Positions 3,101-29,436 of a stretch of 34,331 bases of DNA are shown one piece after another; position 1 is the stretch's first letter, and each line of letters starts with the position of its first letter. The notes beneath the pieces were generated by a model. That model ran no database searches and was not told where the DNA came from. It was given only the letters and a program-made list of their open reading frames with translations. A program made the translations under genes and the position numbers. The stretch is from Lenisia limosa (lineage: Eukaryota; Protista; Breviatea), in NCBI GenBank assembly GCA_001655205.1, contig LPNZ01008459.1, positions 1-34,331 on the forward strand. The letters run 5' to 3'.

Positions 3101-4308
3101 CAGTTTTCGGAGACAAGGAGCCGTACATGGAGAGGATGAACACGCTGCTCAAGTCGAAGATGGAGGGAATGAAGGCCTTCCTTGATACTGTCGCGGTTGG
3201 TAGTCCATGGGCTAACATCTCATTTCACAGTCACCGCCGCCGCCACTGAAGATTCTGTCCTTGGAAGAAACCAAGTCGGCTACGAAGCCTCTTGCTCGTC
3301 TGGTATCGCACTTCAAGAACGCCACGTGGGCCTTGCCATCCTCAGATTTATATTCAAACTATTACTCTTTCATGTTATTTCTTACTGTTGCAGAGCTGAC
3401 CTTGAAAAGTCAGTGGAAAAGAACCCAGACCCGGCCACCAGTCAGACCGTAATGACCCTCAATGAATTGAACTCTCGTCTCGCGCAGGGTACCATCAACG
3501 CCGCTATTCGTATGCAGCTTGGGGTTTTTATATGTTGAATTCCAATTACTGACTCTTCAGATGAGCTTGACAACGCAACCGCCAAAGAAAGAGCAAGGAA
3601 GAAGCGAACGTTAATGAGAGATGCGGCTGAGATGTTACAAGAAGGTGTGACTTAGTCCCATACAATATCTTATGCGCTCGAATCATTTATTTAGGAGCCA
3701 CTTTATTGAAGCATGGCCAACGAGGCAAACCTCATTCAAGGTATGGGCGGTGGATTAACGATTGTAGCACTTATGTAGCACCTTTGTTTTATTCTGTGCT
3801 GAAGTTTCAGATAATATGGGTCCCAGTTAATCATAATCTTACAATATTCATAAATTGCGATTTTTACTTGAGCAGATTTGTGTGGGTGACTTTCAGCCAG
3901 CCTCCACAGCACGTTACACCTGAGGAGAACGGCGGCGGTGAGATGGATATTTGTATTGTGTCATTGTTTTGACTTGGTATTCATAACTCCTTCAGTTCTG
4001 CATTGGACGAAAAAGAAAGGGGACAAGTCGGACCGTGGGTCTATTGAGCTTGTCAATGTCATTCAGCTGACCTCCGGACATGGCACCCCTGTCTTCAAGA
4101 GAACAGGAACGAGTGAGTGATTAACATCGTAATTGAAGCCCAAAAGCCGTTTAACGTATTAGGAGGGGCAGCTGCACGAGCCTTTAGTCTGGTCACACAC
4201 CAGCGTTCGTTTGATGCTGAAGCAGACACCCCCGCTCTGGCTGAAAAGTGGTTTCAAGCGTTGTCAATGGTCGTCAGTCCAACTGCTGTCGCCAAGAAAA
4301 CCACTTAG
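105..4308 (+). CDS. Multi-exon Ras GTPase-activating protein, GAP1-like architecture (C2-C2-RasGAP-PH)
   Basis: Spliced exons give two C2 domains (SPDAYAMVYVN..., VFWGEDVAVEV...VRIAVWD; KLEVTVVEAL...HPVWNEVLDFDL). The RasGAP domain has the arginine finger IIFRGNSLGTK (Arg codon 2072-2074) and SGFAFLRFFCAAILGPKLFGL. A PH domain (LLKHGQRGKPHSR...FSLVTHQRSFDAEAD...KWFQAL) ends at TAG 4306-4308. An acceptor at 98-99 and an open frame over 1-40 mean the true start may lie left of the window. Confidence 0.92.
2641..2711. repeat. Intronic AT-rich self-complementary tract (ATATC/GATAT-type)
   Basis: Contains the perfect 22-bp palindrome TATATGATATATATATCATATA at 2679-2700. Related tracts occur at 1462-1505, 2885-2903, 5006-5070 and 33363-33427. 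Confidence 0.8.
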
Positions 4309-4449
4309 ACATCATGTGTATTCTTTTGATACTCTGTGTATATGCTTATGTACTATGTAATATGATTGATAGAATTTGTTCAAACTTACTTTGAAAAACC
4401 AGCATTTCTAATAAAACATGCAATAGAAGAGGAAAACCATAAAAGGGAA

Positions 4450-6315
<1,866 letters not shown>

Positions 6316-22717: not shown

Positions 22718-23622
22718 TTAAAGGGTATCTACATAAGTGAGAAAAAAAGTTGTTAGATTGACCAATCAAATGAATCCCCTTACCATGGGCAGGGGACTCT
22801 TGTTTGGGAGTTTTCACGTACTCAACCTGAAAACATCAATCACAGAAAATTGATATTTACAAACCGTAGTGCCCTTTTCGTTCTTGAAAGCTCCGAGAAT
22901 AAAGATGACACCAACGCCGAGGAAACAAAGGGCTGCCAAAATGGTTGCAGGGCAGAAAAAAAGTGGGAATGACATACTAAACAATGAAAACAGGATTCCA
23001 TTTGAGATGGTTCTCTCTTGATCATACCCATCCCTCTTACACAACATAAAGAGAACCACGGAAGATGTAGTCAGTTAAGAAGTTCTGAATTGGTTATTGG
23101 AAGGCCGAGAGAGGATTGCAATGTGGGTGAGCGCTAACCAGATACTGGGCGAGAATAGGCCATGGGAATTCCAGAACTGACATAAAAGCTCCACAAAGGC
23201 TAGAAGCATTATGGATCATTAAAACAACCAATTAATCATTTATTCCACTAACATTCCAATGATTCCGACAGGAATACACCCAAGGGCAATGGCGAGGATA
23301 GAAAACAAAATCGTTCCTAAATATTGAGAAGAATTGAGAAAAGCAAACAAAAGAACGAATAATATGAACAACAAATCAACATTATTATGGGTTACATTTC
23401 AGTTTCGATGCTTACCAGGACCGATGAAACGACTGCACAAGGAGGCGAATTTACCAAAGCTGAAAGGAGTGAAAACAAGGAAAGAGTTGATTGTATTTCC
23501 AAATCCAACCCAGATGGTTAATAATAATCATAATAATACAATTTAAGGGTGAGGGGGATCCAAGGTGATTGGGTGAACCAGTAGGCTTACTTTTTGGTCG
23601 CTAATTTCGCTGTTTGCATCAT
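22718..23622 (-). CDS. Small multi-pass membrane protein, TVP18/Flower (Cg6151-P)-like Golgi protein
   Basis: Spliced product MMQTAKLATKNFGKFASLCSRFIGPGTILFSILAIALGCIPVGIIGM...FVELLCQFW...NFLTDYIFRGSLYVVMSFPLFFCPATILAALCFLGVGVIFILGAFKNEKG...ESPAHDTL*. It has 3-4 hydrophobic segments, and the NF-x-FG-like start and FRGSLY motif resemble TVP18/COPI-associated proteins. The family call is from memory of motifs only. Confidence 0.6.
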
Positions 23623-24194
23623 CTTGATCAGATCTTAGTGGGTTACTACGGTATTATTAAGGTATTCAGATATTTCCTGGGTATATCTTTTCTGCTTCTT
23701 TCATGATTTTTGGTGGCGCTGGTTTTAAACCTTGGCGCGAGCGTAATTAATGCCCTCCTTTTTGCCTCTTTTTCCACGGCTCTTTCTTTCTTGAAATTGC
23801 CTTGATTTAACCCTGATTCACACACATCATCATACATTTACCCTGGGCCACAGGGGCGTTTTAAAATTTTACAAATAGTGTAAGATTTTAATAGTTTACT
23901 TGGGTGTCTTTTCTTTCTCATCTTGCAATTGTTGCACACCTCCCTCTGGTGTCTTTTGTTTAAAGAAGAAAAGTAGGTGGGGGGGGGGGGGAGAANNNNN
24001 NNNNNNNNNNNNNNNNNNNNNNNNNNNNNNNNNNNNNNNNNNNNNNNNNNNNNAAATGTCACCTTCCAGACTCACTGGTTTGCATCCTTCAGGGACCCTC
24101 TAAGGAGGAGTCCAGCATCCTCGGTTTCCATTCTTTGACAAAGGTGCGCACTGATATGAGGAAATATGATTCATTGATTATGTAGTAGTTCAAA

Positions 24195-27100
24195 ATGAGT
24201 CAACCAAATTTTTCGAGCGAACCCCCAAGCCCAACTCCGGAACCATTTAGACCTAATTATAGGTATGTTCTACAGATAGGCAATTGTTTGCACCAATGAT
24301 TGGTGTGATAATGTTTGATTTCTGAGTTTCACACATAGCAGCACATCATCGCTCAACTTTCCTGGCACAGCCCCTGCAACTCCGTCTTCAGGACTCCTCC
24401 CTCCGTCCAACATCCCAAGGAACTCGTCACGAGGGCGTCTTATTAACCCCGCTGTCCCCTTTGTCCAAGAGGGCACGGCGCGTGGGGACCGCTCAACTGT
24501 GTTTTCCCTTGTTCTTGACAGTATCCTGGCAGTGGTTAAGGAAAACATTGGTGATGATGCAGTGCAAGAGGTACATGGGTGTCTTGTTCGTTGTGTTATT
24601 GTGGGAGGGCAAACAAGAAGGGTGAAATAAGTGAAAGCAGTCGCTTTGATTATTTTTTGATGACCTTTTATGTTTATTACTTAATGAATGTCTCAGATAT
24701 TAACGTCGGTGACTGGCGGGCCTCAGCCGCTTCAAGACCTTTCATTCCTTCCACCATCACAAGTAAGCTGTCCTTGATCAGCTTTCGATGAATTGGTTTT
24801 TATATTAGTGCGAAAGAGTTTTGAGGAAGTTCTCATATGACCTAGGCCAAAGGCATTGCTGAAGCAGCTGCCCGAGTTGTTGACCTCACACAGCCTGAAC
24901 TAATGCGAGCAGCGGGCAAGCAGTGGTGAGAACTAGGGAAGATAGCATTTCTTTTCACAGTAATAATGCGTCTTTGTTTCTGGATAACAAACCCACATAA
25001 GTAGTGTTTATTTACAACTGTAGTATCAATGTATTGTCTGAAGGTCCACTGAAGAATTTGGTGCGATCAGTGACCTCTTTGGAGTACATGTGTATAAATT
25101 GGGACACTATCGCAAAAGAAGTAGGGAGGAAGGACCGTTGATTGTCCCTTTTAGCCCTATATAACGCATATGATATATTTTGATTGTCACNNNNNNNNNN
25201 NNNNNNNNNNNNNNNNNNNNNNNNNNNNNNNNNNNNNNNNNNNNNNNNNNNNNNNNNNNNNNNNNNNNNNNNNNNNNNNNNNNNNNNNNNNNNNNNNNNN
25301 NNNNNNNNNNNNNNNNNNNNNNNNNNNNNNNNNNNNNNNNNNNNNNNNNNNNNNNNNNNNNNNNNNNNNNCCGATCCTGGCGAATTCTTCTCACTTGGTT
25401 TCTCAGAGTTCCTTTGCGGTGTGGAAGGAGGGACTTAAATTTTTACTTCCCTGTTCTTCTAGATGCTCACTAACGCTACAGGTGTAATTGAAACGATTGC
25501 GTCCCTTTTTGAAATCAATGTGGATATTGATTTCATACCCAGGCCGCCGGGAACATCAACCGACCTTTTTGTTGTTCATATTTCGGCACTTGCAAGTATG
25601 AAGGGAATGCCTCACTATATGATGGATATTTTGGCCACTCCATTTTCTTCACTGATTTTGCAGCTGCGAGACCCAGTTCAGCCCACAACGACAATGTTGT
25701 TGTTCCTTACTTCAAGCTCTCCCTTCCCCCTTCTATTGTTCAAAGCCTCTTCCCTTACCATATTGTCTTCAGCAAAAACCTTGAAGTACAACAAATGGTG
25801 AGATAGGGTTTAAAGGCAATTCTTGGATTGTATGAGTTGTTGCTTGTATTTAATGCTTATTTTTAGGGATACACACTTCAAAGACTCCTACCTAAAGTGG
25901 CATGCAACCGCAGCACATTGGCATCAGAAATCCTGGTGGTGTCGTACCCATACGACTGGTCTTGGTTTGTCAATTATGCAACCTGAATCAGTCTCACCCC
26001 TCAGGGACTTCAATCAAATGAAAGCTCTTGCCACTTTGAACTCCCCCGAGCAGATTCACATTCAGGTTGGTCCTGCTGCTTGTGTCAGTTATCATCCTTT
26101 TTGCGTTGCAACAATTTAATCATCCAGATTCGGGTTGAGGGTGCTTCTGCCAATTTGATGCTGAGAGGCCGGCTCATGGTTTGTCATTGTCATTCTAACA
26201 TATATTCAGTATGAGTCGAGCAAGAATGTTGTTATGGCAGTGCTTACTCCTCAACTTAAGGACAAGGTATGGTAGTGATTTTTTGACACGCATTCATCTC
26301 ACAGATGGAAGCTTACTTGATGGGAATTACACGAGAAGACTTTCCTCCAGAGAGTCTTGCACGCGCAATGGTTGTGTCAAGGTTCGACCATGAACAGTAT
26401 TTGACACTTATTCTTTTTCTTCCGCACATTTTCACCCACCAGAGTTCCGATACACCGTATGGCCTCTAAAATGGATACCCATAAAATCAAACAGGTTGGT
26501 CTGCTTTGCTGTTGTCATTTACCTTATTAGTTGGAACGGTCAGACCGATTACTTCTGAACACTCTTCCTCGATCCATTTTAACAAGACTAAAGGTTTGTA
26601 AGCCTGTTGAACCTCTTTTATCCCCCTTTAGAGGGGGGAGAAGATGATGGCTGACTTCTTCCCCGAATGCACTGTCGGCTTCTGCGACATCGTAAACTTT
26701 CAAAAAGCGGCCAAGTTTCTCACTCCCCTTGCTGTTGTCCATCTTCTTGCTAAGGTCTGGTCTTCACGTCAAATTCTGTGTAACTCTCCAGGTTGTTGCA
26801 GAATTCGACATTTGTTGTGGTCAGTTCGAAGTTGAAAAGATCAAAACAATTGGAGACAACTACATGGTTGCGTCAGGCCTGCCAATGAAAACTGAGGGAC
26901 ATGCATTAAATGGTGGGGCAACGCTTATGTCTTCAGTTAGTTGGTGGTATTTATTTTTTTAGTCGTAGAATTAGCCATTCAATTACAACGGTCCCTTCTG
27001 CGGCTGAATTCAACCATCAACCTGCCGGATGGAGTGAAGTTAGACGTGCGGTGCGGTATCAACACGGGCCCAGGTGGGTGAAGTCTTTTCATCGTTTTTT

Positions 27101-28953
27101 GATGCTTTTGTTCACCTCTTAGTTGTTGCTGGAGTGATTGGAACCAAGAAAGTGGCTTATGATCTTTGGGGAGACGCCGTCAATACCGCATCAAGAATGC
27201 AGTCAACGTGCGCCATTGTTACTTCACAACATTCTCAATTCCTTGAGAGTTTTAACTTTTTAGTGGTATTCCAGGCTACATCCAAGTGTCGTACTCCTCT
27301 TATTCCTACCTGAAGGATATTTTCCTCTTTGACAGACGAGGGCCTATTGCTGTAAAAGGCAAGCGGGGTGAACTGTAGCATCTCAAAAGTCAGAATTGAT
27401 AAGTAAAATCTAACCCCCCCCCCCCCNNNNNNNNNNNNNNNNNNNNNNNNNNNNNNNNNNNNNNNNNNNNNNNNNNNNNNNTTATTGATGATGAGACTGG
27501 TCAGAGGTACTCAGACAGGAACGGCAGGTTCCTTTGGACAAGAATCGGCTCACATTTGAGAAACTGGTGAGCTTCAGGATAGTATTTAGTTAATCAACGA
27601 AACTGTCTAATATTCAGGTGGGAGTATTTGGAAGATATTTCGAACCGAAACGACAAAGATGACAACGTGACCCCTCCAGCAATTTTGAGAGCAAAACAAC
27701 TGTGAGTTAGGATCCAAGGTGAATGATTAATTGTCCAAAATTGCACGTTCTCACGAAGTAGTGAGTCAACCCAGCGTTTGTCTGCGCCACGTAAGGGAAC
27801 CAAAACGGAGGTGGCTATCAAGCCGGACTCCCCAGAGCCTTTTAGGTACCCATACTGCTACACCACACTGTGTTACATATATCAACTCACTAACCTCCCA
27901 AGGTTTGGTAAAACGAAAACGCGTCAGAATGCCACCGGATTCTGTCTTGGAGAACAGGAAGTTTCCAGAGTGGGGGGGGGGTACACTTTGGGCTTCACTT
28001 CAGTTCGAAAAAAGCTTTCTCGATAAATCCTTGAAAATTATCGATATTTTACTTGTCTTTTTCGAGCTAAAGTGAAGCCTTACCTACACTCAATACCAAG
28101 AGATCACTCCTTTAATGGCAACCTCTTATGAGACAGGCAAGCAGTAGACGAAAGTCTTTGGAGCAGCGAACATCTGTGTTTGATGAAGGTTTGTGCTACT
28201 TCGGAGGTGGAAATGAACGTTTACCACTACAGATCGACTCAGACAATCACACAGTCGATTGGAAAGGGCAGAGGAAATTGAAACCAAACCCAAGGTAAGA
28301 AATTCTCATTGTTTCTGATCTTTGGGTTAAAAGTTATTGTCTTCAATAATCACTTTTTTTAGAAGAAACCAGAGGTTCCGGCACACACACGGCTCTATGT
28401 TGCCCCGCCAAACATAAAGCCAAAGGTAGATAGTCCACTATATCAAATCCAAAATCTTTATGCATTGAGTGCCATTACCCATCCCCAGAAAAAGGCAGTC
28501 AGTGGTGCCGAATACCGAACGCAGCTGCGCGACCGTCTGAACGACCTCGTTTTAGCTAGTGTAGGCCGCATTTTCATATTTATGTCATGACCCTGCAGTC
28601 GCCTGGGGTGCCGGCGGACTTTAAGGCATCGCACCGGCCGCTTGTGGCCAAGTCCACCAGGGCACCGTCAGCGGCTTCCAATTCCCGGCCCAACTCAGCC
28701 ACCAAATCTTTCAGGCCGGCATCGGCAACCAGGTGGGTGGCGATCTTATGATCTTTGATCTGATATTGAAGAAAAAAGGTCCCTCCTCCATCCTCGGCAC
28801 CCCTCAGTCGGCCAAAGCCAGTCCGGGCCAAGTCGCGTGCGGTCGAGCCATCCAGTAGGGCATTTGGACATATATGACCCTTGTCTTTCTTCCGCTCTAT
28901 TTGGGAATGCCGTTCACCGTGTAGATGACCCTGTTGATATGGACGATCTGTAG
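24195..28953 (+). CDS. H-NOX(HNOB)-like + HNOBA/PAS + class III nucleotidyl cyclase with adenylyl-type specificity residues; long disordered C-tail
   Basis: H-NOX-like helices [25 protein letters not shown]...[12 protein letters not shown]...[33 protein letters not shown]...LMLRGRLM. Signalling helix [21 protein letters not shown]. Cyclase [64 protein letters not shown]. The last exon gives [10 protein letters not shown] possible extra exon at about 24094-24148 means the start may be upstream. Two N-gaps lie inside the gene. Confidence 0.88.
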
Positions 28954-29436
28954 TGGGTTCTGATCACCCTAATTGTATCATGGTTTTGATGTGTTTTCTT
29001 GATGTATACTATTTGTTTCACTGAAGGTTCATAAGAGTTTGAGTGATTTCTGTTGTGTGCCTGCTGTGTGTCTGCTGTCCGTGTTCGACGTTTGAAGTTT
29101 GCCACTCCACTAAACAACTGTATGTAAAACTGTAAACCCCAGGCAATCTAGGCAACCAATGGGCAACAAAAGGGTTCCTGACTGGCTCCTATACGCTCCT
29201 ATTATTGCCCTCCTCACATTCACATAACTGGAACCCAGCAACACAGATCACTCAGATCATTTATAAAAACGGCCGGATTTTTTTTTTTTTTTTTTGAGGA
29301 AGAANNNNNNNNNNNNNNNNNNNNNNNNNNNNNNNNNNNNNNNNNNNNNNNNNNNNNNNNNNACAAGGAGAAATATTTATGGTTTAAAAAGCCATTAAAC
29401 GCAGTATCATACGCTCGGTTTAATTATATCATCAAG

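Follow-up and report, generated by a model that had tools for sequence, protein, structure and literature searches.

Soluble guanylyl cyclases (sGCs) of animals, choanoflagellates, and chlorophytes are class III enzymes in which HNOB (H-NOX), HNOBA, a signaling helix, and a cyclase domain follow one another in a soluble chain. Their purine-recognizing pair is Glu/Cys, and their catalytic residues are divided between an alpha and a beta chain; the proximal heme-ligating His of sGC beta1 is His105, a YxSxR motif binds the heme propionates, and the H-NOX domain of alpha subunits is heme-free. In class III cyclases, Lys/Asp at the purine positions selects ATP, and a chain containing both metal-binding Asp residues, the purine pair, and the Asn/Arg residues assembles head to tail into a homodimer with two active sites. 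Here, we describe a gene in a window of 34,331 nucleotides (the whole stretch of DNA analyzed; contig LPNZ01008459.1 of assembly GCA_001655205.1) from the breviate protist Lenisia limosa, the predicted product of which combines the domain order of sGC with an adenylyl-type catalytic domain. Judged from its sequence, this product is probably a cytosolic homodimeric adenylyl cyclase with a heme-less regulatory module resembling that of sGC alpha—that is, an unusual member of a known enzyme family, and no new kind of system.

According to a choanoflagellate preprint, the metazoan sGC architecture had until then been known, among protists, from chlorophyte algae only, and the H-NOX proteins of Acanthamoeba are not linked to cyclases. 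BeGC3 of the blastoclad fungus Blastocladiella emersonii (PMC9730499), which is described as a guanylyl cyclase, is like the present protein in being an HNOBA-cyclase of an organism that is neither an animal nor a choanoflagellate nor a green alga. CyaG of Spirulina/Arthrospira, compared here by description only, is an adenylyl cyclase with a guanylyl-cyclase-like catalytic domain and linker and with Lys/Asp specificity, but this bacterial protein is located in the membrane and has neither HNOB nor HNOBA; in PMC1435932 it is put forward as a possible ancestor of guanylyl cyclases. Neither an HNOB/HNOBA adenylyl cyclase nor a pairing of bacterial H-NOX with class III cyclases was found described in the open-access full-text literature, and class III cyclases are not named among H-NOX partners in the excerpted sections of an H-NOX review.

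The Lenisia gene is spliced and transcribed. Two sequencing runs from one study, X1 (DNA-like) and X2 (polyA RNA-seq), were used, and contigs of both were placed on 23300-29250; all sampled words of 25371-27426 are present in X1, and 37% of them in X2, about as expected for exons alone. The contigs of the polyA RNA, which lack the introns, define 14 GT-AG junctions on the plus strand, plus a joint from 27363 to 27482. Coding sequence extends on the plus strand from about 24195 to 28953, in about 31 coding exons, and specifies roughly 920-950 amino acids, with 181 modeled to the left of an assembly gap at 25191-25370 and 714 to its right, where the post-gap model is open throughout. The window is eukaryotic in character, with a GC content of ~42%, many short assembly gaps, short GT-AG introns, and exons of 50-130 nt. 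Pfam, PDB, and large protein searches were run exon by exon, and comparisons of the spliced protein were made with our own profiles. In the resulting order, a disordered N-terminal stretch is followed by a divergent H-NOX-like domain, an HNOBA/PAS-like domain, a short signaling helix, the catalytic domain, and a disordered basic tail. A 19-residue Kyte-Doolittle scan detected no membrane segment, with the maximum of 1.65 lying inside the cyclase fold, in keeping with the soluble protein proposed in a preliminary description of the gene made from the DNA letters.

The catalytic domain and its residues, all on the plus strand, are as follows.

26632 to 27363, plus strand: class III cyclase domain, in exons 26632-26754, 26792-26912, 26963-27073, 27123-27207, and 27264-27363
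26686-26688, plus strand: first metal-binding Asp, codon GAC, in GFCDIVN
26843-26845, plus strand: specificity Lys, codon AAA, in EKIKTIG
26855-26857, plus strand: second metal-binding Asp, codon GAC, in TIGDNYM
27161-27163, plus strand: specificity Asp, codon GAT, in VAYDLWG
27179-27196, plus strand: transition-state Asn and Arg, in VNTASR

Inspection of the codons placed all six catalytic residues in one chain, at the positions given in the preliminary description. RNA pieces cover the cyclase exons over 26630-26752, 26790-26911, and 26962-27071. The five exons match the Pfam family Guanylate_cyc (PF00211) with 15.9, 36.9, 11.8, 36.5, and 16.3 bits, respectively, and do so colinearly (profile positions 6-36, 40-75, 78-110, 112-138, and 140-173). 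The domain is 45-52% identical to Pfam-verified bacterial cyclases, and of the 28 relatives aligned, 27-28 have the same residues in the metal Asp and Asn/Arg columns.

In alignments with solved structures, the specificity Lys falls on the C2 Lys of AC8 and on the Glu of sGC alpha, and the specificity Asp on the one in the YDIWG motif of AC9 C2. The exon containing the Asp scored 32-39 bits against AC9, AC5, and AC8 C2 and mycobacterial Cya, versus at most 23 bits against guanylyl cyclases, and the exon containing the Lys scored 29.2 bits against sGC alpha1 versus 28.7 bits against AC8. When summed over exons—a crude measure—the bit scores were 77-82 for mycobacterial Cya/Rv1625c, 77 for AC8, 67 for AC9, about 60 for GC-A and GC-C, 37 for Chlamydomonas CYG12, and 29 for sGC alpha1. 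Because these sums all favor adenylyl cyclases, the sequence of the domain as a whole is classed as adenylyl-type, and not as that of an sGC domain altered at two positions. Among solved structures, the catalytic exons match best mycobacterial Cya/Rv1625c and the C2 domains of membrane adenylyl cyclases from mammals. These share with the protist domain the Lys/Asp pair and the pattern YD(I/L)WG-x-VN-x-ASRM, and Rv1625c is likewise a homodimer with all residues in one chain; these enzymes are, however, membrane-anchored and without H-NOX or HNOBA.

With the Lys/Asp pair and every catalytic residue in a single catalytic domain, a homodimeric adenylyl cyclase is the natural prediction, and the adenylyl-type, homodimer-capable site of the preliminary description is thereby upheld at the level of prediction, with the full residue set and exon sums nearer to adenylyl cyclases. 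It seems improbable that the enzyme instead makes cGMP, or is of mixed specificity despite Lys/Asp, as a divergent guanylyl cyclase of the sGC lineage. Such an enzyme would accord with the sGC architecture, with the Lys exon fitting sGC alpha1 as well as AC8, and with the presence of Arg rather than Lys in most of the bacterial relatives described below, which means that this site varies within the family; but both specificity residues are those of the ATP pair, the Asp exon and the summed exon scores favor adenylyl cyclases, and the two purine positions have been shown by mutagenesis to switch specificity (Tucker et al., 1998; Kasahara et al., 2001; both as cited in PMC1435932).

The regions preceding the putative adenylyl cyclase domain are arranged as follows.

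24484 to 25120, plus strand: N-terminal two thirds of the H-NOX-like domain, in the end of exon 24339-24570 and in exons 24697-24762, 24846-24925, and 25024-25120
25371 to 25595, plus strand: C-terminal part of the H-NOX-like domain, from the gap to 25418 and, after intron 25419-25481, in exon 25482-25595
25664 to 26381, plus strand: HNOBA (PAS-like) domain, in exons 25664-25797, 25867-25964, 26005-26065, 26128-26178, 26210-26266, and 26305-26381
26443 to 26593, plus strand: signaling helix (coiled-coil linker), in exons 26443-26494 and 26531-26593

The HNOBA domain, like the cyclase domain, is a solid assignment at the sequence level. Its first exon alone scored 19.6 bits (E = 7e-4) with Pfam HNOBA (PF07701), for which the whole-protein cut-off is 23.4, and had the Nostoc H-NOXA domain 2P04 as its top PDB match; our own profile, built from Pfam-verified bacterial HNOBA domains, gave 33.4 bits, versus 8.9 bits for the best of 1000 shuffles. 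RNA confirmed the junctions 25595/25664, 26178/26210, 26266/26305, and 26381/26443. The helix aligns with the linker of bacterial HNOBA-cyclases and is about five residues shorter.

The resemblance of the N-terminal domain to H-NOX appears real but weak. A profile of HNOB built by us from 67 bacterial H-NOX proteins scored 16.6 bits on the spliced N-terminal region, versus 5.7 bits for the best of 1000 shuffles, with the pre-gap side contributing 11.0 bits (profile positions 3-75) and the post-gap side 7.8 bits (139-182), and with the middle third of the domain either unaligned to the profile or in the gap. Searched singly, the HNOB exons had no Pfam or PDB match, a result of little weight for pieces of 22-37 amino acids. 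The domain order of the preliminary description—H-NOX-like, HNOBA/PAS, helix, cyclase—thus holds; its HNOBA label was recovered by both Pfam and our own profile, and its H-NOX-like label depends on the weak score of the HNOB profile.

The residues expected to hold heme were not found in this domain. At the profile-aligned position of YxSxR, just before the G-L/G-F anchor, the protein reads G-E-F-F-S, and no Y-x-S-x-R occurs in the post-gap H-NOX part, including 10 further open codons into the gap. Nor is there a His in the pre-gap H-NOX-like part (residues 61-181 of the model for that side), in which a proximal ligand would be expected; there, in an alignment that is weak and anchored on N-x-D, NWDTIAKE stands in place of the N-L-D-x-x-His of H-NOX, which puts Ala at the ligand position. 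Since YxSxR is absent and no His occupies the expected ligand position, the H-NOX-like domain probably no longer holds heme. The preliminary description had envisaged an H-NOX sensor coupling NO, CO, or O2 to the cyclase, and this part of it is not supported. A working sensor of heme type (or for another small gas), by which NO, CO, or O2 would be coupled to cAMP, is unlikely here: although the domains follow one another as in sGC, the scores of the H-NOX-like parts exceed chance, part of the domain lies unread in the gap, and bacteria pair genuine H-NOX proteins, with both His and YxSxR, with HNOBA-cyclases of the Lys/Asp or Arg/Asp type, the substitution of G-E-F-F-S in a frame that stays open for 10 codons into the gap, the lack of a pre-gap His, and the absence of any alignment of the middle of the domain to the H-NOX profile all speak against it. 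The heme-less H-NOX/PAS module might sense a different ligand.

For the preferred reading, that of a homodimeric adenylyl cyclase with a heme-less module, a mechanism can be proposed by analogy. Two chains would dimerize through HNOBA and the helix, as in sGC and bacterial HNOBA proteins, thereby forming two symmetric active sites that would convert ATP to cAMP. HNOBA and the helix would also pass on a conformational signal as in sGC, for which a cryo-EM study describes these two elements as dimerizing and transmitting such a signal (PMC6839917). The heme-free H-NOX-like domain may act as a structural or regulatory module, as in sGC alpha, and not as an NO/O2 sensor; with the domain free of heme, control would more likely come from a partner protein, from another ligand, or from modification of the Ser/Lys/Pro-rich tail. 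The protein shares with sGC its domain order, solubility, and class III catalytic domain, and would share its mode of dimerization, but it differs in having Lys/Asp instead of Glu/Cys, a full catalytic set in one chain instead of one split between alpha and beta, no YxSxR, no proximal His that could be found, a shorter helix, and an added disordered tail of ~270 amino acids.

A heme-less H-NOX-like domain is also what an alpha-like subunit would have, and HNOBA and the helix are dimerization modules; the protein could on these grounds be one that works only as a heterodimer with a heme-binding, beta-like chain encoded elsewhere in the genome. This arrangement is rather doubtful, as all six catalytic residues are in the chain and no partner is needed.

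Several points weigh against the homodimeric, heme-less adenylyl cyclase proposed here. The Lys/Asp pair predicts ATP as the substrate but is no proof of that specificity. The HNOB label derives from our own profile, and not from a whole-domain match to Pfam HNOB (PF07700) or a fold comparison. The reading of His replaced by Ala relies on the weak N-x-D-anchored alignment, with 25-60 residues of the domain in the gap, and a displaced His could lie among these hidden residues. The rows of the catalytic-domain tree described below include no animal, algal, or choanoflagellate sGC, which limits what the tree says of the position of the protein relative to true sGCs. The donor at 27363/27364, at the end of the cyclase domain, is CG in the assembly, not GT; the RNA lacks the C at 27364, and minus that C the donor (27363-27367) is an ordinary GT, so that the CG may represent an assembly error near a gap, an allele, or a non-canonical intron. 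Finally, with respect to transcript continuity, no RNA contig and no DNA contig from X1 or X2 spans the following feature.

25191 to 25370: assembly gap in the H-NOX-like domain, hiding about 25-60 residues and at least one intron boundary

DNA contigs of X1 reach 113 nt and 61 nt into this gap without meeting, and at least 174 nt are therefore absent from it. The want of a spanning contig is what would favor two separate genes or a misjoined scaffold, with the H-NOX-like piece not fused to the cyclase. This is very improbable: both sides are spliced on the plus strand and have similar RNA contig depths (5.1 and 6.9), there is neither a stop nor a terminal exon on the left and no start on the right, and over the 30 letters that precede 25371 the coding frame of the right-hand side continues without a stop for another 10 codons, the other two frames having stops. 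Furthermore, the H-NOX profile is matched over positions 3-75 to the left and 139-182 to the right, as colinear and non-overlapping pieces of one domain, and because of this colinearity the parts before and after the gap are likely to be one gene.

The remaining parts of the gene are as follows.

24054 to 24194, plus strand: 5' leader, with an exon at ~24054-24143, an intron, and then 24189-24194
24195 to 24483, plus strand: N-terminal extension of ~73 amino acids, low-complexity and Ser/Pro-rich, in exon 24195-24262 and, after an intron, the start of exon 24339-24570
27364 to 27481, plus strand: intron plus gap (gap part 27427-27481), containing the unused TAG 27376-27378
27482 to 28294, plus strand: C-terminal tail exons 1-6 from an RNA contig (27482-27566, 27618-27701, 27762-27845, 27903-27969, 28137-28188, and 28233-28294)
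28363 to 28953, plus strand: C-terminal tail exons 7-11 (28363-28425, 28489-28560, 28599-28732, 28772-28854, and 28925-28953), with the stop at 28951-28953

At the 5' end, an RNA contig is unbroken over 24340-24568, and the GT-AG junction 24262/24339 is in frame. Exon starts at 24493 and 24522 were rejected, since the exon ending at 24570 begins at 24339 in the RNA contig. The two leader pieces were placed by depth arithmetic on a 608-nt RNA contig; no other arrangement of the 177 nt that RNA contig 10 has upstream of 24340 is compatible with the bin depths, which for this contig also agree with the lengths of the pre-gap H-NOX-like exons. The start codon is probably ATG 24195, which is short of proven because, with the acceptor at 24189, the leader frame is open up to a gap at 23996-24053. 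The leader holds a short upstream open reading frame at 24056-24103 (ATG 24056, 15 codons). A strongly expressed spliced gene on the minus strand at 23415-23691 (intron 23460-23590, CT..AC on the plus strand; RNA contig depth 93) marks the upstream limit of the cyclase gene.

On either side of the gap at 25191-25370, the exon boundaries were fixed as follows. After exon 24846-24925, the RNA contig calls for 54 nt, and acceptor 25024 alone offers an open stretch of at least that length in phase; the end of this exon at 25120 was deduced from a GT donor and from a stop at 25139. Another frame for this pre-gap exon, one that contains a His, was rejected, being out of phase after exon 24846-24925, with the RNA fitting acceptor 25024 only. 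After the gap, an RNA contig joins 25418 to 25482, with 13 loose letters equal to 25405-25417 preceding the acceptor 25481/25482; hence, the exon emerging from the gap ends at 25418, and an alternative acceptor at 25462/25463 was discarded. A 12-nt micro-exon at 25407-25418 is unlikely, as the frame remains open 30 nt into the gap.

At the 3' end of the cyclase domain, positions 27363 and 27482 are connected in the RNA by 37 coding letters that lie in the gap 27427-27481 and are seen in RNA alone; the join reads KGKGDMQPYVLIG, the usual ending of a cyclase domain. TAG 27376-27378 was rejected as the stop codon because it lies within the intron and is spliced out. The limits of 24493-27360 in the preliminary description were thus wrong at both ends. 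The tail (27482 to 28953) comprises ~270 amino acids, is basic, disordered, and rich in Ser, Pro, and Lys, and is covered by one RNA contig with ten GT-AG junctions and a frame open across all of them; the four tail exons tested against Pfam (including 27484-27564, 28489-28560, and 28599-28730) gave no match. Several RNA-confirmed introns of the gene measure 31-39 nt (26179-26209, 26267-26304, 28561-28598, and 28733-28771), unusually short for spliceosomal introns. Within intron 27970-28136, the X1 DNA depth rises from ~38 to 2575 at 28016-28053, where many contigs stop; this looks like a short high-copy repeat of ~38 nt.

Relatives of the catalytic domain were sought in an exhaustive protein search with the Lys exon, which returned 187 proteins at E ≤0.001, most of them twelve-helix adenylyl cyclases or bacterial cyclases linked to TPR, Cache, or Tll0287 domains. 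This search yielded no sGC and no copy of the protist protein, and its sole match with an HNOBA domain was P0096, from a 1.4-kb metagenome contig also encoding a genuine H-NOX with His and YxSxR. The metagenome contig L001:1-1366 contains an H-NOX plus HNOBA-cyclase unit of the kind described next, but with frame breaks and with the helix and parts of the cyclase missing; it represents either a copy in decay or a fault of assembly. Traced into bacterial genomes, P0096 led to Chloroflexi/Anaerolineae loci, in which a two-gene unit is conserved: a gene for H-NOX alone directly precedes one for an HNOBA-helix-class III cyclase of 365-375 amino acids. At one such locus (L003), the H-NOX gene (3399-3995; Pfam HNOB 151.7 bits) overlaps the start of the next gene by four bases, and that gene (3995-5098) encodes a 368-residue protein matching HNOBA with 94 bits and Guanylate_cyc with 204 bits. 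Examples of the unit are L003:3399-5098, L002, and the P0258 contig, along with clusters P0151-P0230 and P0231-P0258, and at least 10 H-NOX plus cyclase clusters sit on contigs of matching size.

The database contains 28 clusters of these HNOBA-cyclases (P0231-P0258). Both metal Asp residues are conserved in all 28 and Asn/Arg in 27, the other row being gapped there; the purine positions are Arg/Asp in 27 and Lys/Asp in one, namely P0258, the gene for which lies 56 nt behind an HNOB gene. Residues 82-441 of the protist protein, which span the whole of HNOBA, the helix, and the cyclase domain, align with bacterial HNOBA-cyclases at 33-34% identity over ~365 amino acids (E = 1e-67), and word searches seeded from a bacterial HNOBA-cyclase gave bacterial matches only. 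The Chloroflexi unit thus resembles the protist protein in its HNOBA-helix-cyclase core, its complete catalytic set, its Asp at the second specificity site, and, in P0258, its Lys; it differs in having H-NOX as a separate gene with His and YxSxR (in the H-NOX of L001 and four aligned members), in having mostly Arg at the Lys site, and in lacking introns and the tail. In P0351 and P0352, the HNOBA domain, which shares 66-67% identity with its counterpart in the bacterial cyclases, is attached to a histidine kinase, an indication that output domains have been exchanged within this bacterial group.

Bacterial contamination or recent transfer was rejected as a source of the protist gene, given its roughly 30 spliceosomal introns and polyA RNA. 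In a catalytic-domain tree of 82 rows, a well-supported Chloroflexi clade holds 10 of the 11 sampled HNOBA-cyclases, and the protist branch falls outside this clade without a well-supported partner; a direct origin from the Chloroflexi clade is therefore not shown. Of the bacterial link raised in the preliminary description, then, the existence of a split version was borne out, whereas descent from that clade was not. It is conceivable, albeit unlikely, that the protein is a surviving fused form of a bacterial unit of H-NOX and HNOBA-adenylyl cyclase, and that the sGC architecture was first that of a cAMP-forming homodimer; if this were so, Glu/Cys specificity, the splitting into alpha and beta chains, and NO-cGMP signaling would have come later.

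Proteins of the sGC type have been regarded as guanylyl cyclases that occur in animals, choanoflagellates, and green algae only, and annotation by architecture alone would mislabel the protist protein as a guanylyl cyclase. The likely loss of heme binding reduces its value as a gas sensor. The protein nonetheless offers a natural test of how an H-NOX/PAS/helix module would drive a homodimeric adenylyl cyclase, and, together with the uncharacterized bacterial H-NOX/HNOBA-cyclase pairs, the gene bears on the origin of NO-cGMP signaling.

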